Made by a program: the position numbers and the translations under genes | Source: Paragordius varius | Taxonomy: Eukaryota; Animalia; Nematomorpha | NCBI GenBank assembly: GCA_964247055.1 | Contig: OZ176052.1 | Span: 186,001-250,000, forward strand | Reading direction: 5' to 3' | DNA length: 64,000 bases | Shown: piece by piece, positions 5,501 to 44,344 of the stretch | How positions within the stretch are numbered: the first letter of the stretch is position 1 | Layout of the letters: every line of letters begins with the position of its first letter | The notes under the pieces: generated by a model | What the model saw: the letters and a program-made list of their open reading frames with translations, nothing else | Databases searched by the model: none | What the model was told of the DNA's origin: nothing

Positions 5501-7364
5501 TAAGGTTACTTCACGTTTTTTCAGTTCTTTACTAAGCGTTCGAGATATTACAGTTTGAAGTTCACTAATGAGCGTTACAATACCCATAATATCTAAAAAA
5601 TTGTTTAAACAACAAAGTTAAAATAAAGAAAATAAGGGATTTGGAATTGCTTAAAATATATGTGGTTGGATGTCTGAGTTGACATTATAAATAGAATTTT
5701 TAATATTTCTAAGAATATCTAACTATCGTGCCTTTTTGTTATTTTTGTCAATGCAAAGTTTATTGAAAGTGAGCATAATTTAGAAGTATATTAGGAAATT
5801 GATTTAACCAAAAAAAATTTTGAGAAATTTTTTCAATTTATAGCGAAATAAAATTCTTAAATCATATTTGATATTAAATAACCAGTTTTTAAAAAAATTC
5901 CAAAAATTTCCGGTTAAAATGATATATTTCCCATAAAACTAACCTATAAATTTATCTTTTTCCAAGTCAACTATATCTTTTATGGCGACTAAATTGTATT
6001 TGACATTGGGAACAGTCTCAAAATTATCATAGCAAGGGACTATCGAGGTGTCACTATTCAACGTTAACTCATAATCATTGTTGAGGTTATTGAAGGCTTT
6101 ATTTGCAGCTTTTATGGATGCTTTGGATATGTAATATACCTAATAAGGCAAATAAAAATTTTAAAATATTAGTTAATCTAAAAAAACTCATATAACAACT
6201 TTTAAAATTTTTTAAAAAGTTGGTCACATATAAAGAATTAGGAAAGTATTTATCTGATATAAAGAATATAATTCCTGATTTAAAAGTATAGCTAAGGTTT
6301 CATCAATTATATATTAGGTATTGAAAATTAAATTATAGAAAAGAATTAAATATTAAAATATGTCCTTTTTCAAGCTTTAAGACTTTTATATAATGTTGCA
6401 TAAAACTTTATGACAAAAAATATTTATACCTTTCCAATCTCTATGAGCGGATAAAATTTATCGCATTCCTCATTAAAGCAGGTGGCTTTAATCTCACCAC
6501 TATCATCCAACAATTCCATATTAAAGAGTTTCCCTTCCCCGCGAGAATTACTCCAAGTTTTAATGGCGGATTTCGCAGTTACGCGGACTTTGATTGACCA
6601 TCTGAGAACAAAGAAAAAAGTTTATTATAAAGAATTTAAAACTAAAATTTTTAGCAAAATGGGCAATAATAAAACTTACTTATTTTGATAAGGTGTTAAA
6701 CTAGCAATGGGATTTGTAGGGCCTATATTTTGAGTCACCGAATAATTTTCTTTTTTGTTGTTTGTCAGCAATGCTTTATCTTTATTTGGATTAAAATCTT
6801 TTGCAATGTAATTGTTACTTGAATTTTTGAGTACATTTGACGGGTTATTGGCAAAATTTGAGGTGGGTTTTAAGGTTTCGTTACTTTGTTTAGAAATACT
6901 TTGGGCGGATGCTTGAGTATATGGCTCAGGGTTTCCAATCTTTTGACTGATTTTCCCAGGTTTCAGAACTTTTAATTCTCCAATCATAATAACTTTCCTG
7001 AAAATATATTTATAACCCTTACTTTTCAGGACTAATTACATTACAATAATATTTTTCTAGTTTAATGATTGCAAAATTTTCTAGTTCACCACTTGTGATC
7101 AAATAATTTAACTGACTAGCTAACAAAACTGATGTTGTAAGTTTTTTCCCATCTGAAAGAAGTAACCGGTAGCGATCTGAATTAGATTCGGCACTTGTCA
7201 TTTTTTTGTAACTCAATAATTGAACAATGGGTTGATGAAGGTCTTCTTCATTTAACATCAACTATAAAAAAATAATGGTATAATATTATAATTCGGAAAA
7301 AAGTATTTTAAATGCAATTTGGCAAGATAATAACCTGAATAGCGTTTTCTGTTAAGGGATTCAT
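2522..7364 (-). CDS. RPA1: Replication protein A 70-kDa subunit; 12 exons: 7364-7335, 7261-7023, 6997-6680, 6601-6430, 6139-5944, 5592-5382, 4840-4653, 4211-4090, 3873-3760, 3606-3502, 3203-3114, 2632-2522 (~631 aa)
   Basis: All junctions are GT-AG and phase-consistent. Motifs: [10 protein letters not shown] and KIGNPEPY (N-domain); [20 protein letters not shown] and [25 protein letters not shown] (DBD-A); [12 protein letters not shown] and [10 protein letters not shown] (DBD-B); Zn-binding [12 protein letters not shown]...YRCEKC and [11 protein letters not shown] (DBD-C). Confidence 0.97.
2721..2999. mobile_element. MITE family A, full-length type copy in the last RPA1 intron
   Basis: Begins TA|CAGTAAAAATTGAAAAATTATACGG and ends CCGTATATTTTCAATTTTTACTG|TA. 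The TIRs are ~80 bp with TA flanks. At least 24 related copies occur in the window. Confidence 0.85.
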
Positions 7365-9699: not shown

Positions 9700-10100
9700 T
9701 TATATACCTGCACTTCAAAAGTGTCCTTGAACACCTTAAGTTGATCCTTAAACACTTCAAGTTGGTCCTTGAACAATTCAAATCGGTCCTTGAACATTTC
9801 AAGTTGGTCCTTAAACATTTCAAGTTGGTCTTTTAACACTTCAAGTTGGTCCTTGAACAATTCAAGTTGGTCCTTGAACAATTCAAGTGATCCTTGAACA
9901 GTTCAAGTTGGTCCTTAAACATTTCATGTTGGTCCTTGAACACTTCAAGTTGGTCCTTGAACAGTTCAAGTTGGTCTTGAACAGTTCAAGTTGGTCCTTG
10001 AACATTTCAAGTTAATCCTTTGACTTTTTTGTTTTAACTTTTTTCAATCAAATCGTGTATCATTTACCTATTTTATTATTTTGAACTTATTCTCTTGATT
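9700..10100. repeat. 21-bp tandem array (CAAGTTGGTCCTTGAACACTT-like), arm of a family B3 element
   Basis: About 14 units. The 3' flank (tgactttttt..caatcaaatcgt..ctattttatt) recurs at ~63915-64000, and the same unit follows TATACCATTTACA at ~36466. Confidence 0.8.
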
Positions 10101-11141
10101 TAACCATATTTTTAACTTTGGGTCATTCAGATACTGTATATTTTTATTAAGTTTTTAAAAATATATAAATTTTAATAAGATTTCAACATAATTGAAAAAA
10201 ATATAGGTTTTCTGGGTTATTAATTAGAATTTTTCGTTGACATTATATGAAGCGATTACCTTTAGAGTATTCAATACCAAGATTACCTTGAGAATCCTGT
10301 GACATTTTTCCATTAAATTTATATTTAATCAAGATATTTATTGTGTTCACTGTGTTATTAACACTTTACATTTTGGTAGTAGTTTTATACGTCAGACACT
10401 CTTAAATATTTCAAAAAGTATATTATAAATCATCTCAAATTTCAATGCCATATTTTTGTTTAAATTTTTTAATTCGCTATTACAACAGGCAATATATGCT
10501 GCATATTTTAACTAAAAAAAGTTAAATAATAGTTTTGAAAAGCCTTAAAAGAATATTTATCAAACAAATCAGCTGTTTAATTATGGAGCTATTGAAATAT
10601 GTGGTCCCAGAAGTAAAAATATTATAACGTTTGGGGTAGAAAACTACCCAAAATGTAATCGTTTTATAAAATTAAAAAGGTAATAAAGTTTTAACAAAAA
10701 TATCTGGCAATAAACTAGGAAGAAATATATTGGAAAAAATAAATGGTATTAATTAGTCTTTTTTTTGCCAAACGAATGGGATGAAAATTAATTTCGATTA
10801 AAACAATTTACCAAAAAATAATAATTTCATAATTAAAATTATAAAGGGAATACACATAACTTAAACAATTCTTTCAAAAATACAGGCATACTTTTTGTAA
10901 TAAACAAACTTATCGATTACTTTGTAAATTATAGGATCAAATGTTTTAGTAAAACACATCTATATCCCATAGCGACCTTAATTGATTGGATATATTAAAT
11001 ACTAAAATTATGGCTGTCTTATAATAAGAAAATATTTGCAATTTTATTATATTGTCTTTATCAATGTTTACCGTAAATTATTTCATAATTTAACCATCAA
11101 TTAAAGCAGGGGTGTCCAATACGAAGTCCAAGATTTTATAT

Positions 11142-11179
<38 letters not shown>

Positions 11180-11184
11180 TTATA

Positions 11185-11420
11185 CCATTTACAAGTCAAA
11201 TTCACCCACGAATAATTCAGATTCACCCTAAAAATAAATTGTGTTTTCTGGCTAATATAAAATTTATTTTTATGGAATAGTTTATTATTTTTTCAGTAAT
11301 ATATTATTTTTAAACAAAATTTTATTTTTTCTTACAAAATATAAAAAAATATAGGTAATTTTTAATTTTAAACATAATTTTTAGGGTGAATTTGAATTGT
11401 TCAAGGGTAAACTGTAAATG
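11185..11420. mobile_element. MITE family B1 (TATA|CCATTTACA termini), short copy flanked by (TA)n
   Basis: TATACCATTTACAAGTCAAATTCACCC...GGGTGAATTTGAATTG..TGTAAATG with the conserved AT-rich core. Confidence 0.75.
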
Positions 11421-12754
11421 TATATATATATATATATATTGTCCTTATAATTTTAAAGCATTAATGAAATATTCTAGAACAAGGGGGGCCAACACGCGCC
11501 CAAAAAAGTTTTGAAGCCCACTAGAAATTTTAAAATAAATTTTTTTTGAAATCTAAGTAAAATCGATTTTTATAAACAAATTTTTCCACAATAAATCTTT
11601 CCGAATTTCGGCAATGAACTAACTAGTAAAAAATGTAGTTTTCACCATTTTATGTTTGTAATTTAATAAAATATTTTTGTTAATGCCCATATATTCTGCA
11701 AATAAGGGCATTCGGATTTTTAACCTCGAAATTTGGCCTGCAAAGCTATTTGCGTTGACCATCTTTGTTTTAGACAAAAGCCATAGAAGCCTGAAATAGA
11801 GAAAATAGAGGAAAAATACTATTGGAATAAACATTATTTAAAAATTTTTCACAAAAACAATATGCCGCGTCATAAAAACAAAAATAAAACTCTTTTATGT
11901 GCGGCCAATTGATTTTTTACGACAATGCAGCTTATGAAACCATTCATGTTGTACAAAATAAAGTATACAATTTATACGATTTTTCAAACTATAACTTATT
12001 AAAAATCAAGAAAATTTAAACATTTATTTGGCTGACCTTTAGAGTTTTGAGGTTAAAACATCTCTAAACTCGTATAATTTTTGATTAATGCTATTTTACG
12101 CAAAATACCTTGACCCATAGCTAAAATTTAATAATGGTCGACGCATTCATAACGCTTAAAGGATTAAATCCACAAACTAATTGAAAATATCGAACCGCGT
12201 ATTTAAAAATTAAATGGAAGCATTTATTAATTTAAATAAACCTACATGTTTTTTCCAGAATATTGCTTTAAAACACGATAAATTTTAATTATAAATAAAT
12301 TCGGATTAAATAATATTTATGTGTATATCGTCCCGCACAAAGGTTTAAGGCTCAATATAAAATGGATATCCCTAAATAGAGTTACATAGGACTTTTAACA
12401 AAACAATGTATATAGATTGATTAAATATATTTATTAGCGCAATAACAATAATTTAAGTATAGTAAAATTTTATCAATGATTACGAAGATATAAATAAAAA
12501 TTGCGTTATATAAGTATATTTTGCTAGGAGCTAGTTGACTAGAATAAACGAATTTACAAGTGTTTATAAATGAAAACGCATTTTGCATATATATATTAAA
12601 GTATATTCCACAAATAATATATATATTATAAATAAAAAGAGTATTATTTTAAAGTAAAAAAAGATGGGATAAAATAAATTTTATATAAATTGCAAGCAAG
12701 CAAAGAAAATATTTTTTTTCCTGATAATTATCGTTTCAATAGCCTCAACGCAGT

Positions 12755-35334: not shown

Positions 35335-36900
35335 TTAGCTAGAAAAGAATATAGCACACTTTATCGATTTGGCAATTTGAATTTGGATTGGCAATATGAT
35401 CGATATTAGGACGAAGATGTTGAAATGCTACATATGTTTAATTTCCAATTATATCATTTAACACTTCATTATATATTCATATTTTGAATGCGATGATATT
35501 TTACGCTAAATCCCCCCCCCCAGAGTTTATATAGTAAACAAACTAATGTTTAAAAGTTGTTTAAAAACCTAAATATTAATTTCTCTTCACAAAAAACTTA
35601 GATTTTTACAGTTTTCTATAGTCCGCAATTAGCATGCAACCAAAACACGAATGAAATAAATAGCGGTTATTAGAAGTATTTTTTGGTTTCTAATCATTTA
35701 ATGCTTTTATTCTTTAGCGATCTAATTTGAATTCCAAAAAATGACGTTTGAGACGGAATTATTTTTAAAATTTAAAATAATATTTTTTATTGTTAGTCTA
35801 AAAGGCCAAATGCATTTTTATGATTGGGCTCAACATCGACATATAATATATTTAAAATAAACTAACCAAATATGTAGGGTGTTGAATCATTTGGAGCTAA
35901 AAATCTATAGCAAAATCATAGCTTATATGAATTTTTAAATTACACTAGACAACCAATTTTTCTGCCGCTCGAATTCTTTGCATTTTCTGATATTTACTAT
36001 TTAACAGTAAATCTGAAATAAATATAAATCCTCCTAAAATTTTGTATACAGTCATAAATCTTTTCTTTTGGCAAATAAATTTTTTTGTTTAGGTATTTTT
36101 ATTTTTTAAAGAAAAAAAGGAGCTCCGCGGTATTAACAATATCATATTCATCAAAAAAAGTAAAAGGAATGTGGGGAATGGCTTCGAAAATCATTAAAAA
36201 ACTGTTTAAATATAATGATAATCTAACAAGTAACACTTAATCTTAAAATATTGTTAAAGGGGAATGGTAATAAAAAAATTTAAATTTTTCAGCAAAATTT
36301 TATTACTTTTTTTGAAAAATTTTAAAGAAAACAAATCAACAACGTAAAAATTAATTTTGATATATAGAAAAAATATATTTGTTTAAAAGATATCACAATG
36401 AATAAAACAAACATTATAACGGAACCAAAGGATGTAATCATATATTCTATATGTATACCATTTACACTTCAAATTGTCCTTGAAAACTTCACGTTGGTCC
36501 TTCAACATTTCAAGTTGATCCTTAAATTTCATTAATTTTGGATTTGACCATAAATTTTGCATGATTTTATTAATTTTAAACCTAATTTTTTTGATTTATG
36601 ATATATTTATTCAATTAAAATTACTATTTTTAATTAAATAACCATTTTAAAATAATCTTATATCATTCAAGAACATTATTCAATTATCTAAACTCAAAAA
36701 GTTGACGCACATCATGCTAAATAAGATTATTTTAAGAAAGCCAAATTCTTCAGGCTAAAAATACCAATACTCATCATAAACCAGTAGCAACTACTAATTT
36801 TAACCCAAAACTGTTTGTTTCAAGGGCCGTGCACAATAACGATAAAAACTTCATAGCTCTATGACCATGTTTGCCGATGTTTGCACTTACAATAAATATA

Positions 36901-38316
36901 CCATTTCCCAGTCTAAATAAACGTCTTCCCTGTCTATCGAAACACTTCCCAATCAATCGAAACGTTTTCCCAGTCAATCCAAACATTTTCCCAGTCAATC
37001 GAAACATTTTCCCAGTCAATAAAAACATTTTCCCAATCAATTAAAACGGTTTTATTTTTGATAATAAGTATCAAAACAAGATAGAACCTTTAAACATTAT
37101 CAGCGTAATATTAGGATATTATTTTTTTATATGAAAATATTTTCTATATATTCCAATACACAATCATTATTAATTATTCTTTAAAAGCTATTTTTATTAA
37201 CTGGAAGAATATTTTATAGTTTTTTATTTTTAAGAAAATATTTAATAATTTTTTTATTTTATCGATGATTCGCATTAATATTCGGGGCTAAATTTTAAAG
37301 TCTATAGTTATGGATAATAAAATTTATAAAAATATACCATTTTTTTCTTAAAGGTCATTTAACACTGCATATTGTATCATAAACATGTCGAATTGTGTAT
37401 AAAAATACTCTTGGAAATAAATCTAAACAACACATGGTTTTAAATATGTTTTTCATTTAAAAATATTTTATAAAAAAGGATATTTTAACACAATGGCTTC
37501 GCATGCCGCATTTTTAACTCAAGCATGGCGTTCCGCATTCGTATTATATACGGACATTCATAAATAATTTATTCGATCTTAGGCATAAGTCTGTAAAGTA
37601 CAAATACAATATTTTTTTTTAATTCGTTGCCCAATTTTATAGACTCATTCAGAATCATAGCGTAAGAAATATGAATTTTACTAAGATTTTGTGGGCATAT
37701 TTTTGTATTGGATTTCCAAATTTTTCGCGGGCCATACAAAGATTCGGAAGGCCGCCTTAGGTCTCCGATGGACCAAATGATAAATATAAAAAATAGGGTA
37801 AAATCTATGTCTAAGACCCAATATGAAGTGTTAAATGACCTTTGAGATAAAAATGGTATATTTTTACAAATTTTATTATCCGTAACTATAGACTTTAAAA
37901 GTTAGCCTCGTATATTAATGCGAACCATCGATAAAATAAAAAAATTATTAAATATTTTCCTAAAAATACTTAAAAACCATAAAATATTCTTCCAGTTAAT
38001 AAAATATAGCTTTTATAGAATAAATTATTAATGATTGTGTAATGGAATATATAGGAAATATTGTCATTAAATAATTGAGATTTTTTAAAAAATAATATCC
38101 TAATGATACGCTGATAATGGTTAAAAGTTATTTTTCTATCTTGTTTTGAAACTTATCATCAAATATTAAACCGTTTTGACTGGAAAAACGTTTTTATTGA
38201 TTGGGAAAATGCTTCGATTGATTCGGAAGATGTTTTGATTGACTGGGAAAACGTTTCGATTGACTTGGAAAAGGTTTCGATTGACTGGGAAAACGTTTAT
38301 TTAGACTAGGAAATGG
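36901..38316. mobile_element. Foldback-like TIR element (family B2), ~450-bp inverted arms
   Basis: TATA|CCATTTCCCAGTCTAAATAAACGT...ACGTTTATTTAGACTAGGAAATGG|TATA. Subterminal ~21-bp repeats (TTCCCAGTCAATCGAAACGTT); the arms are inverted copies over ~36901-37345 and ~37850-38316. Confidence 0.88.
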
Positions 38317-38771
38317 TATACATTAAGAAATTTAATAGATAAATCAGAGCCATAAGAAAGCACTTTTAAAGCCACATGCGGCCCGCCGGCCGCGGTTTGT
38401 GTGCCACTTTCATAAACTATAGGCTAAAAGGAAAATGATGTACTAAAATATTTTTAAGTCTTAACTTCCCCCTCTAAAATGGGCATTTTAAAATAAACAC
38501 GAAAATTCTGCTTTCTTCGTAAATCTCGTGGGATATATATGTCAAATTATTTTTTACCATTTTGTTAGAGCGTATTTGTTATTTTAAAGTATGGAATTAG
38601 TAGATAAATGAAACATTTCTATATAATTTGAGATTAATAAATATAATTAAAATTTTGAAGATTTTACTACCTAATCGCTTTATATTTAGATTTAAATAAC
38701 TAAATATTCGCAATAACCCATTTTTCAAATAATTATTATATCTATTTTCCTCGTTGTCAGACTTATAATCA

Positions 38772-38813
38772 GTTGTTTCCTTATTCCATCCGTGTGTATC
38801 CCTTGCTTGAACC
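38772..38813 (+). promoter_or_regulatory. Pyrimidine-rich (TCT/5'TOP-like) leader of RPS11
   Basis: gtttccttattccatcc lies just upstream of the MADQ start; ribosomal protein genes typically initiate in such tracts. Confidence 0.35.
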
Positions 38814-41800
38814 ATGGCTGATCAGGTATTCATAAAATTGTTTTATTTTAAGTTTATCATTTTGTTGAAAAATATTTAATAATTCATTAATTATAATGAG
38901 TCTGCCTACTCCAAATTTTAAAAGTGTTAAAAGCGCATTCCATACCTGGTCTACGAAAAAGGATAGAAAACAACAGTTGGAAAGACTTGTCTCACATCAA
39001 TACAATTTTTATATAGCATCTTTAGATTATAAATATTTCTATGAAGACAATTGGACGATAATTTCTACACTTTCGCAATCAGCTTATGGGATAGTATATC
39101 GCGTGAGAGACGTTAAAGGCATAGAATATGCGCTTAAAATTTCGTTAAAGCAACAACATAATCATCGCATTTTTAATCAAATACCAAATCATCGCAATAT
39201 AGTTCGGCATCTTTTGACATGGAGCGAAAATGAATTTTATTTTTTACTTACCGAACTTTGTGACCATAGCCTGTCCTATACGCATTTAAGCAAAGTTGGT
39301 ACTTTGATTAGGGAAGAATTATTGCAGAAGTGGACAATTGATATTTTAAACGGCTTAAATGCTTTACATAGTGTTAATTGTGTTCATTTGGATATAAAAC
39401 CTGACAATCTTTTAATCAAAAATGGTACTTGTAAAATTGGAGACTTTGGTTTAGCTTCTATTCTTCCTAGTCACACCGGTGATTCTGATATATCTGAGAG
39501 CAATTTTCACATTCATGATGGAGATAATCGATATTTAGCTCCTGAACTTTTAAACGGACATTTCACTCTGGCAGCCGATATTTTTAGTTTGGGAGTTACG
39601 CTTTTAGAATTGGCTACAGATTTAAGTTTACCTGACTCGGGTGAGTGCTGGATAGCACTTCGTCAGGGTCAATTACCTCCCCCAGAAGTTTTAAAATCTT
39701 CCGATTTTTCTCCCCAGTTTTTTGATTTAATTCGTTTAATGCTAAATCCCGATCCGAAAGCAAGACCGACCGTTTCCCAACTTTTATATGAAGGTCGTAG
39801 TCCTTGGATACCATCTCAATCTTTTTTTCCAATCATAAATCCTTTTTCAAGTATAATAAACGCCATTTTGATAAACTCGTTTTGGGATCGTCTGATGACC
39901 TTTTTTAGGCAGACGATTGCACGCATGCCCTTATTACCTTTGAATGTGAAGCGAAAATGTTGCACGATTTTATTATTTGATTGTCCAAATTTGGCTGCCA
40001 TTAATATATTCAAAGTGATGTGTAGCGCTTTTTGGCAAAAGACTAAATCCATAAAGTACAACAATCTTACAACACCTACCTCTGCAAACATATCTCCAAA
40101 ACCAGCTGTTTTAACACCAGAATCAGAATTTAGCGGATCGGAAATGACAGATTGTAATAAACAGGCCTCACTTGTATCCCGTGGAACTAAATTGAGATTT
40201 ATGTCAACTGCTGGTAAACGGAACTTCCGGAAAACGTTAAGGTTTGAAGATGACCAACCTCCAAAATTTGATTTGTTTGATCAAAATTTTGCAGATTATG
40301 GAGAAAATATTGAAACTAATCCCAACTCTGACATTGACTGTTTTAAACCAACAGAAACCTCAAGCAGCATCTTTCGTTCTTTGTTAACGGATTTTGATGA
40401 ATCGATCTCTCTTTCATGAATATTGCATTTTAATATATTCATCATTTCTTTTTATGTGATATCAATTTATTCTATTATAAATGCTAGAATCTGTTTCTTA
40501 TTTATTATTACTATTAAAAATAAATTTTTATACTATTTTATATAAATACCGCGTGAATTTCGTTTTATAGGTTGTTGTTTTTAAACACCATATTTTGAAT
40601 AACCTTAATTTAGACTGAGAGAGCTTTTCAAAAGCAACCCGCTATCTTTCAAAACCGCAAAGCATGCGTAAAGAAATCCAAAAAAGGACTTCGGTACTAT
40701 AAAAACATTGGATTGGGTTTTAAGACCCCACGTGAGGTACAATCCTTCAATTATACTGCAATTTAAAATATTATAAATTTAAAAAATTAAAAAAAAATTA
40801 ATAAAAAACTATTATTTTTATAATTGATTTTTTCCACATAAACTATAAATTACATTTTTAATATACACTCATGAATCCTTTATTTTATCAAAAATTAATT
40901 TTTTTTTCGTTAAATAAGTATAAATATTGGTAAAGAATGGAAATTCTATGGTAATTTATATACTTTTTTGATATAATATGTTATTTCTAATACCATAAAG
41001 CTTTTATTTTATTCTTTATTTAACAAATATTTATACCAATTAACGAAAAAAAAATTATGATAAAATAAAAGATACATGACTGTAATCCAATTTTTTGCAT
41101 TTTAAATGATAACTTATATTTTAAAATATCGAGATTTAAAAAGATAATAAGGTTTTCTTTATAAAACAGACATTTTAATTTTTATTTTGTCCTTATATTT
41201 TTTTCACAGGCTATTGAAGGCACATACATTGATAAGAAATGTCCCTTTACGGGTGACATTCACATTAGAGGTCGAATCCTAACAGCCACAGTTCTTAAAA
41301 TGAAAATGCAAAGAACGATTGTGGTTAGACGCAATTATTTGCATTACATACGAAAGTATAATCGATTTGAAAAACGACATCGGAATATGAGTGTTCATTT
41401 ATCGCCTTGTTTTAGGTAATCCTTTTTTATTTAATTATTTGTGTTTAGCTTAGATTTAAAATTTTATCAAATTTTGAAGACATATTTTTTCTTTATTTTG
41501 CAATTCAATCTATAAGTTATATTATCAGGATTTGAAATTTTACTTTTTTTACATGAAATATATCTTTTAGTACAAGTTTGTCTTTATAATTAATGATAGT
41601 GAGTACACCAATTGAGTTTTTTTCAAAATTTTATGATGATATTATGTTGCATTGAATTCATATATGATTACATGCAAAGCCAATCCTCTGAATTATTAAA
41701 TGTGAATTTAAAAAGAAATTATAAATACTAAAGGACAAATATTTTTTATAAAGACAGCCATACTTTTCTAAAACCTTTTTCCATAATTTTTATAATTTTT

Positions 41801-42190
41801 TGCAACAACGCGCGATTGATTATTTAAAATTATACATTAAGGTGTAAGTTTTATAGTTTTTTATAAAGACAGCCATACTGTAAACCTTGCTTTTTCTCCA
41901 TAATTTTACTAATTAAAATTTTTTTATTTTGCAACAACGCGCGATGGTTTATTAAGAATACATTAAAGTGTATAATAAGTTTTATGGTTTGTCCAGTTTA
42001 AAAAATTTTTTATGTTAAATATTTAATTTCAATTTTTACTATAAATATGCATTTATGATATAGGGATGTCCAGGTTGGAGACATTGTCACGATTGGAGAA
42101 TGTCGACCTTTAAGCAAAACTGTTCGTTTCAATGTTCTCAAAGTGACCAAAGCTTCGGGTTCCAAGAAGAAACAATTTCAAAAATTTTAA
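38814..42190 (+). CDS. RPS11: 40S ribosomal protein S11 (uS17); exons 38814-38825, 40614-40736, 41210-41415, 42064-42190 (155 aa)
   Basis: MADQ|[14 protein letters not shown]...[14 protein letters not shown]|[15 protein letters not shown]...RGRIL...[37 protein letters not shown]|[28 protein letters not shown]...FQKF*. Exon 2 is preceded by an in-frame TAG acceptor, so an upstream exon is required. Exons 2-4 are near certain; exon 1 is slightly less so. Confidence 0.93.
38896..40419 (+). CDS. PKMYT1: Myt1 (PKMYT1/Wee1-family) CDK1-inhibitory kinase, intronless, 507 aa
   Basis: [61 protein letters not shown] (Myt1-like). A hydrophobic segment follows the kinase domain, and the C-terminal [10 protein letters not shown] resembles the RxL cyclin-binding tail of Myt1. 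Confidence 0.9.
   Translation: MSLPTPNFKSVKSAFHTWSTKKDRKQQLERLVSHQYNFYIASLDYKYFYEDNWTIISTLSQSAYGIVYRVRDVKGIEYALKISLKQQHNHRIFNQIPNHRNIVRHLLTWSENEFYFLLTELCDHSLSYTHLSKVGTLIREELLQKWTIDILNGLNALHSVNCVHLDIKPDNLLIKNGTCKIGDFGLASILPSHTGDSDISESNFHIHDGDNRYLAPELLNGHFTLAADIFSLGVTLLELATDLSLPDSGECWIALRQGQLPPPEVLKSSDFSPQFFDLIRLMLNPDPKARPTVSQLLYEGRSPWIPSQSFFPIINPFSSIINAILINSFWDRLMTFFRQTIARMPLLPLNVKRKCCTILLFDCPNLAAINIFKVMCSAFWQKTKSIKYNNLTTPTSANISPKPAVLTPESEFSGSEMTDCNKQASLVSRGTKLRFMSTAGKRNFRKTLRFEDDQPPKFDLFDQNFADYGENIETNPNSDIDCFKPTETSSSIFRSLLTDFDESISLS
40519..40524 (+). promoter_or_regulatory. Candidate intronic polyadenylation signal for Myt1
   Basis: AATAAA ~100 nt after the Myt1 stop and ~90 nt before the RPS11 exon 2 acceptor. 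The AT-rich background makes a chance match possible. Confidence 0.4.
40866..41085. mobile_element. MITE family C palindromic copy in RPS11 intron 2
   Basis: CATGAATCCTTTATTTTATCA..TTTTTCGTTAA.. versus ..TTAACGAAAAAA..TGATAAAATAAAAGATACATGACTGTA form inverted arms. Confidence 0.65.
41628..41696 (+). ncRNA. Candidate box C/D snoRNA in RPS11 intron 3, guiding 28S rRNA Um in AGGAUUGGCU
   Basis: Box C ATGATGA 41633-41639, D' TTGA 41652-41655, C' ATGATTA 41664-41670, guide AGCCAATCCT 41678-41687, box D CTGA 41688-41691, with an AATT/AATT terminal stem. Confidence 0.7.
41730..41995. repeat. ~135-bp direct tandem duplication of a family A MITE remnant
   Basis: ATAAAGACAGCCATACT...TTGCAACAACGCGCGAT...ATACATTAA occurs twice. 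Confidence 0.8.
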
Positions 42191-42314
42191 TAAATTAAAT
42201 AAATGAAAAAATATTAAATTTATACATTTAAATTTATATTATTTTATATATATAGAAAGAGTTGTAAGAGTTTGAAAAAAATGACATTGACTTTTTTATA
42301 GTTATTTAGGGATA

Positions 42315-44344
42315 CAGTAAAAAAGACAAATATTTTTCTTTCTGAAAGACAACCACACTTTTTGAATCTTGATTTTTAAAATATAACTCATTGCTCAGGT
42401 TGTTTTAAAGTGTTATATTGAAAAATATATTACTATTACAATTACCTACATTTACAGTTAAAATTGAAATTATACGGACAATATGTAGAAATATAAAGAC
42501 AAATAATTTTTTAAAAAAACCATACTTTTTATAATCCTAATTTTTCTCAATTTACAATGGTAAAATATAGAATTGATTGTGTTAGTAATATATATTTGTG
42601 TTTCAGACTTCGTCATTTAATACAATGAGTTATATTTCAATATCAAAATAAAAATATGGTTTTCTTTTAAGAAAAAATATTAGTCTTTATGTTTTTACAT
42701 TTTGTCCGTATAATTTCAATTTTTATTATATTGTATTGAATAACTTATATAGAAAAAATTAAGTTTTGAAAAAGTATGGTTGGTTGTCTTTAAAAACAAT
42801 ATTTTATATTTTTACGTTTTATCCTCCCGTATAATCTCAATTTCTAATGTAATTTAAGCTTTATTTATATTTTTATCGATTTTTCCGCTTTTCTATCGGA
42901 AATATTGAATGTGGTCCTATGTTATTTTGCAATAGTTAGTTTTTATGTAACGGTTTTGTCATTAAATAAAGCCGGGGTCGCGCGTTAAGATTTGATATAT
43001 GCAAGATAGAGAGATATTTGGGCGGATTAAATAAAAGACCGAACAGTATATAAAGCTGTTCAAAAATTTCAATGAGAGTAGTATTATGGTGTGAATCGCA
43101 AATTTATTTAAAAAAAGTCCCATGTAAGCAGTGTAACATATTTTCTATCTTATTTATAATAAGTCATCAAGTTTAAGATGTTATCTGCACATTATAGCTA
43201 ATAATATAACTTTATTGATTTGATTTTCATCTTTCCATTTTTCAATAGAAGCTGTATTAGAATTAAGATTTATATTGTATGAATTATTTTATACATGGTG
43301 GCGTGAAACAGGAATAAAACTTTAAAATTATAATAAATCTAATCAATATTCAAATATTTTATATAATTTTTTTTTGCTACTATCTGTATATATTGAAAGT
43401 CAAATGAAGTTTTAATTTCTATTTGCTATTTCTTAATAACAAAACAATTTATGAGAACATCGCTAATTATTTAATATAATATCTAAAACACTTAAAAACA
43501 ATACGATTAAAATAATTTATTGATGATAAATACTATATTATATATTATATATATATATGCATAACATTAAAAATTTAATATTGATAAATTATATATTAAT
43601 ATTGCATTTTGTATTTAATAATTATATATGTTTTGACTTGGTTAAAATTATCACAGTTCAGCATTCCCGCCAATCTCTTCCAATTTTCTGTAATATAAAA
43701 AGATTTTTATTATAAATTCTTAAGAAGAAAAATAAATTTTTGTAATTAACTAAGCTTACAGTATTACAGTAAAAATTGAAATTATACGGACAAAATGTAA
43801 ATATATAATAAACAACCATACTTTTTTAAACCTTAATTTAACCTAAAAAATCAATAATTAAAATTGTAAAATACAGAATTGAGTGTGTTAAACCAAACAT
43901 CTCTATTAGAGTTTAAAACAATTAGTTCTATTTAAAAAATCAAATTTTAAAAGTATGGTTAGTATTTTAGATAAAAAATGTTAAATTTCCGTTTTGTCCG
44001 TAAAAAATTTCAATTTTTACTGTAAATTTAATTACATTGTGCATTTTAATGGTTGTTATACGGACAAAATGTGAAAATATAAAGACAAATTTTTTTATCT
44101 AAAAGACAACCCCATACTTTTTTAATCTTAATTTATTTCAACTCATTGTTTTAATCAACTACAAAGTATAATATAGAAATGAAAATTGGTAGCACAACCA
44201 ATTATATATTTTACGATTATAACTTTATAGCTTATATGAGAAAAATCAAGGTTTAAAAAAGTATATGGTTGTCTTTAAGATAAAACTATTTGTCTTTATA
44301 CTTTTACACTTTGTCCTTCTGTATAATTTCTTCACTTTTTACTG
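42315..44344. mobile_element. MITE family A copies: nested pair ~42315-42850, plus ~43767-44022 and ~44057-44344
   Basis: Family A TIR motifs. At 42315-42850 one copy (42453-42725) sits between the two arms of another. Confidence 0.7.

Follow-up and report, generated by a model that had tools for sequence, protein, structure and literature searches.

A Myt1-type kinase gene nested in the first intron of the ribosomal protein gene RPS11 in two horsehair worms

Nested genes of mouse and human show no more than a slight bias in orientation, and first introns are favoured as host sites (PMC11694760), so that the statement of the initial annotation that nested genes are usually antisense to their hosts was too strong. 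The layout described here, in which a Myt1-type kinase gene lies inside RPS11, has a well-known precedent, its closest parallel being the cholinergic ChAT/VAChT locus (unc-17/cha-1 in C. elegans), where VAChT is placed inside the first intron of ChAT (PMC3053374). As in RPS11/Myt1, the nested ORF of that locus is a single exon, contained wholly in the first intron of the host and on the same strand, and the arrangement is kept across distant species (PMC3053374). A common upstream region serves both cholinergic genes, which are expressed through alternative processing (PMC3053374). However, the products of ChAT and VAChT share one pathway, whereas nothing is known to connect RPS11 with a CDK1-inhibitory kinase. 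In addition, the shared first exon of ChAT/VAChT is non-coding, whereas exon 1 of RPS11 holds the start codon of the host, which would open an upstream ORF (uORF). Shared transcripts are documented for ChAT/VAChT and would be predicted for RPS11/Myt1, and the RPS11 host, unlike ChAT, ranks in any cell among the genes with the highest expression.

Intronless genes of the retroposition type inside a host intron, as the kinase is here, are also found among the imprinted mouse retrogenes, of which Mcts2/H13 and Nap1l5/Herc3 are examples. According to work cited in PMC11694760, imprinted mouse loci of this kind go together with premature polyadenylation of the host, and expression of the nested gene and of the full-length host mRNA are alternative outcomes. 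However, such retrogenes have their own, imprinted promoters and occupy internal introns, whereas the kinase starts 70 nt past the first donor with no separate promoter evident. Introns of ribosomal protein genes that host snoRNAs give, as is proposed for RPS11/Myt1, a second functional product from the same primary transcript, but the passenger of RPS11 is a 1.5-kb protein-coding gene needing capping or translation and polyadenylation, and not a small RNA processed from the intron. Finally, the operons of nematodes, the sister phylum, express several genes per promoter, as is also proposed for this locus; their genes are nevertheless in tandem, whereas the kinase is intronic, and no spliced leader was detected in the window, that is, in the whole stretch of 64,000 nucleotides of Paragordius varius that was analysed (contig OZ176052.1, positions 186,001 to 250,000).

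The RPS11 protein encoded by four exons on the plus strand of the window is complete and stop-free (155 aa). Coding exon 1 is the 12-nt sequence ATGGCTGATCAG (MADQ; 38814-38825), assigned from its single-copy pattern and its match in Gordionus. Exon 2 (TERAFQKQ...TPRE; 40614-40736) showed 88% identity to the Gordionus exon by tblastn; in exon 3 (41210-41415) every listed variant was a synonymous, third-position change; and exon 4, stop codon included, covers positions 42064-42190. Intron 1 (38826-40613; 1,788 nt, phase 0) has as donor ATGGCTGATCAG followed by GTATTC, which begins at 38826, and as acceptor ...TTTAG/ACT at 40613/40614, with an in-frame TAG directly 5' of exon 2. The pattern ATGGCNGAYCARGT occurred once in the 64 kb window, against an expectation of 0.00. 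Solved RPS11 chains aligned with exon 2 from residue 5 or 6 and, as a consequence, four to five residues must necessarily come from an upstream exon. The position of RPS11 exon 1 upstream of the kinase was confirmed, and the coordinates initially given for exon 1 and for exon 2 with its preceding TAG were all borne out. No Rfam family, either snoRNA or other structured RNA, was identified in the RPS11 introns or in the window.

The whole kinase gene lies within intron 1. Its intronless coding sequence (38896-40419, plus strand, stop included), recognized by a Pkinase match and similarity to PKMYT1, encodes 507 aa and begins 70 nt past the donor of RPS11 exon 1. It has no internal stop, occupies 85% of the intron on the same strand as RPS11 and is by far the longest ORF in the window, the runner-up having 147 aa. 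The nested layout that had been claimed, namely an intact and intronless 507-aa Myt1-type ORF in the same orientation within a 1,788-nt first intron, was thus found where it had been placed. The locus is covered by contigs of DNA runs from at least three samples, and one piece (40381-40622) spans both the 3' end of the kinase and RPS11 exon 2. The sequencing runs containing the locus look like DNA, since depth did not change between exons and introns, nor between the kinase and RPS11; in the two RNA-labelled runs under the same species label the locus was absent, even at 85% likeness. An assembly artefact was ruled out by the contigs from these samples together with the presence of the same layout in an independent assembly of another genus.

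This other genus is Gordionus (Gordionus sp., Nematomorpha), whose public genome contains an RPS11 exon ATGGCAGATCAA followed by GT, a 47-nt spacer, an intronless Myt1-like ORF of 458 aa and RPS11 exon 2. In the Gordionus record the RPS11 gene extends from 9942 to 12349 and the 458-aa kinase gene from 10001 to 11377, on the same strand. In OX940786.2 this corresponds to about 691,583-693,990 for RPS11, with exon 1 at about 691,583-691,594, the kinase at about 691,642-693,018 and the beginning of exon 2 at about 693,243. Its intron 1, of 1,648 nt, has a content equal to that of the 1,788-nt intron of the window, so the comparison of this intron in a relative, which had been suggested as a check, returned the same order, strand and intron. 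The sequence ATGGCAGATCAA followed by GTAATA is the annotated RPS11 start in Gordionus. That annotation was built using RNA-seq and protein hints (10.1101/2023.06.26.546503) and gives indirect support to the intron between RPS11 exons 1 and 2. The Gordionus RPS11 protein carries the PF16205 and PF00366 annotation and is identical to that of the window in 143 of 155 residues, with only 49% of third codon positions in agreement, and the two nested kinases have 48% identity. Non-coding DNA could not be aligned between the two, which share no more than the short words GTTTCCTT and TATTCCATC, and the flanking genes show no shared synteny. Judged by this shared layout, the nesting is orthologous and older than the separation of the two lineages, which have since diverged beyond alignment in their non-coding DNA. 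No transcript-derived fragments of the N-terminus of the Gordionus kinase were found in the protein collection, and the RefSeq model of this kinase, with 362 aa, is shorter than the 458-aa ORF. A Logan contig encoding one kinase-matching protein was considered as a further nested case and discarded, as it came from an unrelated organism and had no RPS11 leader.

The Pfam Pkinase domain was found at residues 58-297 of the kinase ORF (E = 6.1e-37). Human PKMYT1 chains scored 137 bits against this ORF and WEE1 85 bits, and the named top database matches were nearly all PKMYT1/wee-1.3 (membrane-associated tyrosine- and threonine-specific cdc2-inhibitory kinase), all of which points to a kinase of the Myt1/PKMYT1 type, nearer PKMYT1 than WEE1. 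The best sequence match of the window kinase is canonical Myt1 (Priapulus, Pollicipes, human), with which it has in common the core motifs, the PTPxF...FSTKK and FxxLLxxF...S motifs and, in the corresponding place after the kinase domain, a possible hydrophobic stretch. K81 (beta3), H164 and D166 (HxD), N171, D183-F-G and A215-P-E are invariant in the kinase alignment. The N-terminal motif PTPxF...FSTKK is kept, as is the C-terminal one, with P6, S19, K21, F500 and S505 invariant across eight Myt1 proteins, and the C-terminal tail (10 residues) aligns to GPKNLMxxF; in vertebrates, this RxL-like C-terminal tail of Myt1 binds cyclin B. On the other hand, the window kinase differs from canonical Myt1, which has about 9-14 coding exons, in its lack of introns and its other neighbourhood, and in its degenerate glycine loop, missing alpha-C glutamate and weaker hydrophobic segment. 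The best 19-residue Kyte-Doolittle mean of this segment was 1.54 (residues 358-376), below the maxima at the equivalent position in Priapulus (2.12) and Pollicipes (2.05), that of Gordionus being 1.10. The glycine loop reads SQSAYG in the window and SDTLTS in Gordionus. The position of the alpha-C glutamate, by HMMER alignment to the human protein, is occupied by Q95 in the window, R in a sister lineage and E in Gordionus. There is also a 10-residue deletion ahead of helix alpha-C with respect to canonical Myt1, and residues 82-110 of the window kinase contain no acidic residue. As a consequence of the degenerate glycine loop and the missing alpha-C glutamate, the catalytic activity of the window kinase must be considered uncertain.

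Outgroup Myt1 genes have about 14 coding exons in Priapulus and about 9 in the barnacle Pollicipes; neither is near RPS11, and both adjoin an Iso_dh gene. One Myt1-like cluster of Gordionus was seen in a protein search of limited sensitivity. The initial proposal that the kinase is a retrocopy is plausible as regards its origin, given the multi-exon structure and different location of the outgroup genes; the hallmarks of retroposition did not accompany it, since neither an A-run nor a flanking direct repeat (target-site duplication) was visible past the kinase 3' UTR. Retroposition would have placed a Myt1 mRNA in RPS11 intron 1, itself ancient, and the nesting is probably an old and retained state of horsehair worms derived from this event. 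A poly(A) remnant and target-site duplications are expected to have decayed at the age of the nesting, and their absence is a weak counterargument.

For the expression of both genes we favour, with confidence that is about evenly balanced, a reading in which the retroposed Myt1 uses the RPS11 promoter region and the transcripts have two exclusive fates. Between the RPS11 donor and the kinase ATG there are just 47-70 nt, too few for a separate kinase promoter, so that the kinase would rely on the promoter region of RPS11. The pyrimidine-rich words GTTTCCTT and TATTCCATC (38775-38790, plus strand) are located 23-39 nt upstream of the RPS11 ATG; in Gordionus they are adjacent, in swapped order, at 7-24 nt. 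Shared upstream 8-mers had p ~0.01 against shuffles, although AT-rich control windows also share 7-mers, and these words are at most weak candidates for an RPS11 initiator of the TCT/TOP type. A scan for bacterial-type promoters and terminators, whose models are unsuited to a eukaryote, stayed at chance level. Transcripts would begin at the start site of RPS11 or close to it. In the majority, 38825 would be spliced to 40614, removing the kinase and giving the RPS11 mRNA. In the minority, cleavage and polyadenylation past the kinase stop but ahead of exon 2 would give the kinase mRNA. The candidate poly(A) signals ATTAAA (40513) and AATAAA (40519), spanning 40513-40524 on the plus strand, are 94-100 nt past the kinase stop, with about 90 nt left to RPS11 exon 2. 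The AATAAA reported initially after the kinase is therefore present, but with a background of 3.8 AATAAA per kb the two signals are not above chance and as evidence of polyadenylation are merely compatible with the model. Pairing between the ends of intron 1 able to loop out the kinase was equalled by shuffled sequences in both species. Altogether, a single pre-mRNA with a choice between splicing and polyadenylation is plausible, and the locus looks more like a low-abundance regulator hitch-hiking on a promoter than like a demonstrated switch between growth and mitosis.

In an unspliced transcript, the RPS11 ATG would open a short uORF of 21 codons (38814-38879, plus strand; stop at 38877-38879) ending 16 nt before the kinase ATG; the corresponding uORF of Gordionus has 17 codons and ends 5 nt before. 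The RPS11-ATG frame closes ahead of the kinase ATG in both species, as chance alone would lead to expect in AT-rich DNA. Under the favoured reading, this uORF, ending just 5' of the kinase ATG, would keep translation of the kinase low, and the kinase would be translated through reinitiation or leaky scanning. The strong context of the RPS11 ATG (ACCATGG) counts against the model because downstream initiation would be inefficient. The 362-aa RefSeq kinase of Gordionus likewise counts against it, as its transcript might begin within the ORF or immediately ahead of it.

It is also possible, if rather unlikely, that the kinase is an autonomous nested gene, with its own start in the 70-nt spacer, or in or just before exon 1 but past the RPS11 ATG, which takes advantage of the open chromatin of RPS11 and produces its own capped mRNA, while RPS11 transcripts read through and splice the kinase out. 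Separate promoters exist in many host/nested pairs, and VAChT promoters also lie inside the first intron of ChAT, according to references given in PMC3053374. Such a start would avoid the strong RPS11 ATG as a uORF and would fit the shortened 5' end of the RefSeq Gordionus kinase model, and in the window spacer an A/T-rich CATAAAAT precedes the kinase ATG by about 60 nt. However, the 47-nt spacer of Gordionus has scarcely room for a core promoter and a leader, the spacers have no sequence conserved between the window and Gordionus, and a start so near below a very active promoter would be exposed to transcriptional interference.

Doubtful, in turn, is a polycistronic precursor made from the RPS11 promoter, the kinase mRNA being released by trans-splicing of a leader to the spacer AG (38852; 9996 in Gordionus) and polyadenylation, or a genome-wide, operon-like packing of genes on the same strand. 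Each species has exactly one AG per spacer, preceded by a T-rich run, and SL trans-splicing and operons are established in nematodes, the sister phylum. The AG of the 70-nt window spacer closes a candidate 27-nt micro-intron (GTATTC...TTTTAAG; 38826-38852, plus strand) or would be a trans-splice acceptor; that of Gordionus is 4 nt before the kinase ATG. A micro-intron of this size is feasible given the 25-nt RPA1 intron in the window (6998-7022, minus strand), which is required for the RPA1 reading frame. However, the AAG of the window is a poor acceptor in comparison with the TAG/CAG at the three acceptors of the RPS11 introns, no spliced leader is known for Nematomorpha or was found in the literature searched, and neither an SL RNA nor any other Rfam family is present within the window.

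It is very improbable that the kinase ORF represents a retrocopy, silent or in decay, which does no more than leave with the spliced intron. The absence of introns, the degenerate glycine loop and the missing alpha-C glutamate would agree with decay, as would a dN/dS only moderately below 1. In the partial list of variants within the species complex, 21 changed kinase codons were synonymous and 32 non-synonymous, with non-synonymous sites 3.75 times more available, giving a dN/dS of about 0.4-0.5. However, ORFs 507 and 458 codons long have stayed open in two lineages with saturated neutral DNA, which in DNA of 27-35% G+C requires selection, and the catalytic K, HxD, N, DFG and APE are kept together with the motifs at both termini. 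The listed indels of a sister lineage also keep the frame open (+3/+6 and paired -1/+1), a cluster of TAA/T/A insertions in the last two kinase codons only bringing the stop two codons earlier, and no second Myt1 of Gordionus appeared in the protein search of limited sensitivity mentioned above. These data suggest that the kinase ORF is under constraint within the species complex.

Hardly credible is a start of RPS11 below the kinase, with both genes simply neighbours, which the initial annotation had kept as an alternative: although ATGCTAGAATCT followed by GTTTCT (ATG, in-frame codons and GT at 40481-40494) and the comparable ATGATTCAT followed by GT past the Gordionus kinase could provide it, such short patterns are expected by chance within some 200 nt of AT-rich DNA and their products (MLES and MIH) resemble neither each other nor RPS11, whereas MADQ followed by GT is unique in the window, kept in both species, annotated in Gordionus, and fits the RPS11 N-terminus and the length of solved RPS11 chains.

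The locus is a clean example, conserved across genera, of a sense-strand protein-coding gene in intron 1 of a ribosomal protein gene with very high expression, the kinase starting merely 47-70 nt past a 12-nt coding exon of the host. Nematomorpha is, to our knowledge, a phylum with almost no molecular biology. One may speculate, although we hold it to be unlikely, that horsehair worms make systematic use of the first introns of housekeeping genes to express intronless genes, with one promoter and a tiny host exon 1 acting as shared leader or uORF, as an alternative to the SL2 operons of nematodes; RPS11/Myt1 would then be the first case of this habit validated in more than one genus. If this were so, cell-cycle control would be tied to the transcription of growth genes, and possibly to TOP-type translational control. 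Since one primary transcript would yield just one of the two mRNAs, the locus offers a natural test bed for splicing versus intronic polyadenylation and, in addition, for reinitiation after a uORF derived from the host. Standard gene predictors can lose or truncate nested pairs of this kind, as occurred with the Gordionus kinase in RefSeq (362 aa against the 458-aa ORF).

The four exons of RPS11 lie on the plus strand at 38814-38825, 40614-40736, 41210-41415 and 42064-42190, and once joined they give a complete 155-aa protein; the introns of 1,788, 473 and 648 nt are all of the GT...AG type. The sequence of exon 1 is ATGGCTGATCAG, with GTATTC directly downstream, and exon 2 starts with TERAFQKQ... 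after the junction TTTAG|ACTGAGAGAGCT at 40613/40614. Alignment of exon 2 with solved eukaryotic RPS11 chains begins at residue 5 or 6 and, as a consequence, an RPS11 exon of 4-5 residues must lie upstream. The pattern ATGGCNGAYCARGT was found once in the 64-kb window, against 0.00 occurrences expected from shuffles. The sequence is strongly AT-rich (G+C content of 18-35% in 1-kb steps over the 30-50 kb region). A kinase ORF of 507 codons, also on the plus strand, occupies positions 38896-40419, inside intron 1. The coordinates of the initial annotation, which had placed a Myt1 gene there, were all correct, including those of ATTAAA/AATAAA at 40513/40519.

The best database match of the kinase belongs to Gordionus sp. 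m RMFG-2023 (54% identity), a result that assigns the window to Nematomorpha. In this organism (OX940786.2) a 155-aa RPS11 gene is annotated at 9942-12349 and a 458-aa kinase gene at 10001-11377, inside RPS11 and on the same strand. RPS11 starts there with ATGGCAGATCAA|GTAATA, followed by a 47-nt spacer and the kinase ATG; its exon 2 begins at 11602, preceded by ...CTGTTAG, and all three intron positions match those of the window. Intron 1 of a distantly related species thus also contains a same-strand kinase gene. The nested layout, confirmed in the window, is strengthened by this conservation across genera, and the structural part of the initial annotation's interpretation is supported. The public Gordionus annotation, built from RNA-seq and protein hints, already carries both overlapping models. 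The RefSeq product of its kinase (XP_065321565.1) has 362 aa and begins at Met97 of the 458-aa ORF (ENA CAK9301165.1), a 5' truncation that may be caused by the nested position. The kinases of the window and Gordionus are 48% identical over 313 residues and the RPS11 third codon positions only 49% identical; promoter, spacer and 3' regions could not be aligned, and none of the other genes of the 21-kb Gordionus locus was found in the 64-kb window. This low identity, together with the unalignable non-coding DNA and the unshared neighbours, indicates an old nesting that persisted while all neutral sequence around it decayed.

The 507-aa ORF is by a wide margin the longest of the window (the runner-up has 147 aa) and contains a protein kinase domain (Pfam E = 6e-37). 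Its named top database matches are nearly all membrane-associated tyrosine- and threonine-specific cdc2-inhibitory kinases, and among solved structures it scored 137 bits with human PKMYT1 and 85 bits with WEE1. In an alignment with seven other Myt1 proteins, the catalytic Lys, HxD, Asn, DFG and APE are kept, and the N-terminal PTPxF...FSTKK motif and the C-terminal F..LL..F...S tail are conserved. Furthermore, a moderately hydrophobic stretch occupies the place of the membrane segment of other Myt1 proteins. As judged by sequence, the ORF is a Myt1-family member, although its catalytic competence is not assured because of a degenerate glycine loop, a 10-residue deletion ahead of helix alpha-C and an alpha-C glutamate that appears to be missing, since residues 82-110 include no acidic residue. 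HMMER aligns Q95 of the window ORF with this glutamate, a position where Gordionus has E and a sister lineage R.

In the outgroups Priapulus and Pollicipes (a barnacle), Myt1 is divided into ~14 coding segments over 10 kb and ~9 over 6.7 kb, respectively, with no RPS11 close by. In both it adjoins, head to tail, an Iso_dh-family gene, a conserved microsynteny that has been lost in horsehair worms. Loss of all introns together with relocation is a signature of retroposition, and the fact that no poly(A) remnant survives at the kinase locus is expected for so old a nesting. The retrocopy origin formerly proposed for the gene is, on these grounds, plausible.

The locus was present in DNA runs of at least three samples, one of which (runs X4 and X11) is ~3-5% diverged. 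Among the differences listed, 21 changed kinase codons were synonymous and 32 non-synonymous which, against a site ratio of 1:3.75, gives a dN/dS of ~0.4-0.5. Of the indels listed inside the ORF, +3 (GAT) and +6 (GATGAT) fall precisely at codon boundaries, and a -1 and a +1 change form a pair separated by 7 nt. A further cluster of insertions (TAA/T/A) affects the last two codons, where the added TAA creates a stop two codons early. None of these indels breaks the frame upstream of this early stop. The six RPS11 exon differences listed were all synonymous and at third positions. Within the species complex, the kinase is under purifying selection yet fast-evolving.

Runs covering the locus behaved as DNA, with even depth across introns and exons. 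No RPS11 or kinase sequence of 38500-42400, RPS11 exons included, was detected in the RNA-labelled runs (X5 and X7) even at 85% likeness. These runs bear the same species name as the DNA runs, a name that may include another species; among horsehair worms, misidentified data sets have been reported for Chordodes (10.64898/2026.02.03.703548). Transcript-derived kinase fragments were also absent from the protein collection. Since the kinase ATG lies 70 nt past the RPS11 donor (47 nt in Gordionus), with the RPS11 ATG 12 nt further up, any kinase promoter must overlap that of RPS11. From this anatomy we favour, at even chances, a reading with two exclusive fates for transcripts of the RPS11 start region. 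Splicing of 38825 to 40614 would give RPS11 mRNA, necessarily the great majority, whereas the kinase mRNA would arise from cleavage and polyadenylation within the 194-nt stretch that separates the kinase stop from exon 2. The RPS11 ATG has a strong context (ACCATGG), with a 21-codon uORF whose stop lies 16 nt before the kinase ATG (17 codons and 5 nt in Gordionus). With this uORF on its mRNA the kinase would be translated by reinitiation or leaky scanning, and the resulting low output would suit a regulator that is sensitive to dosage and driven by a very strong promoter. Neither the poly(A) hexamers nor the uORF stop are above chance in such AT-rich DNA, no base-pairing was found between the ends of intron 1, and the RPS11 introns contained no snoRNA or other Rfam family. 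The splice-or-polyadenylate switch of the initial annotation, and its physiological meaning, is best taken as a proposal.

In-frame removal of a 27-nt GT...AAG segment (38826-38852) is also feasible, although its AAG acceptor differs from the TAG/CAG found in the RPS11 introns. This candidate micro-intron is conceivable because a 25-nt spliceosomal intron, GTAAGGGTTATAAATATATTTTCAG, is found in the N-terminal domain of RPA1 (6998-7022, minus strand), whose excision fuses two frames so that an RPA70N-like sequence runs through without a break. Micro-introns occur in the genome side by side with introns of 0.5-1.8 kb. As a rival to the two-fate reading, the kinase might have its own start site inside the spacer, a doubtful though appreciable possibility, with a promoter that would still overlap that of RPS11. 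Trans-splicing or operon-like resolution, for which the spacer offers a single AG, is unlikely. A silent retrocopy is highly improbable, and an RPS11 start downstream of the kinase is slightly more so.

Compared with known loci, the closest precedent is the cholinergic gene locus, in which intron 1 of ChAT contains the single-exon VAChT ORF on the same strand, a layout conserved from nematodes to mammals with shared and internal promoters (PMC3053374). Nested genes of mouse and human prefer first introns, and their expression can be accompanied by premature host polyadenylation; the notion that they are usually antisense is overstated, opposite-strand genes being only slightly in excess (PMC11694760). 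The RPS11/kinase architecture therefore belongs to a known kind, and what is unusual here is that the host is a ribosomal protein gene and the passenger a CDK1-inhibitory kinase, that the kinase starts extremely near a first exon that is coding, and that the layout is conserved. No paper describing the RPS11/Myt1 arrangement was found.

Several repeats were identified around RPS11. A foldback-type palindromic element of ~1.4 kb (36893-38324) stops ~490 nt short of the RPS11 ATG and has arms at ~36893-37386 and 37807-38324 that are 75-91% complementary. Tandem subrepeats of 21 nt, TTGACTGGGAAAACGTTTCGA and its complement, are found at both of its ends. Intron 2 contains a 221-nt MITE-like element with 58-nt inverted arms (40864-41084), and similar repeats lie at 41644-41774 and 42299-42400. 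In the DNA runs, the element reaches a contig word depth of ~2e5, compared with a baseline of ~400, which implies hundreds of genomic copies. Due to these repeats, introns 2 and 3 are longer in the window (473 and 648 nt) than in Gordionus (113 and 179 nt). Finally, an isolated G+C-rich palindrome, TGCGGCCCGCCGGCCGCG, lies amid AT-rich DNA at 38377-38394, ~420 nt upstream of RPS11.
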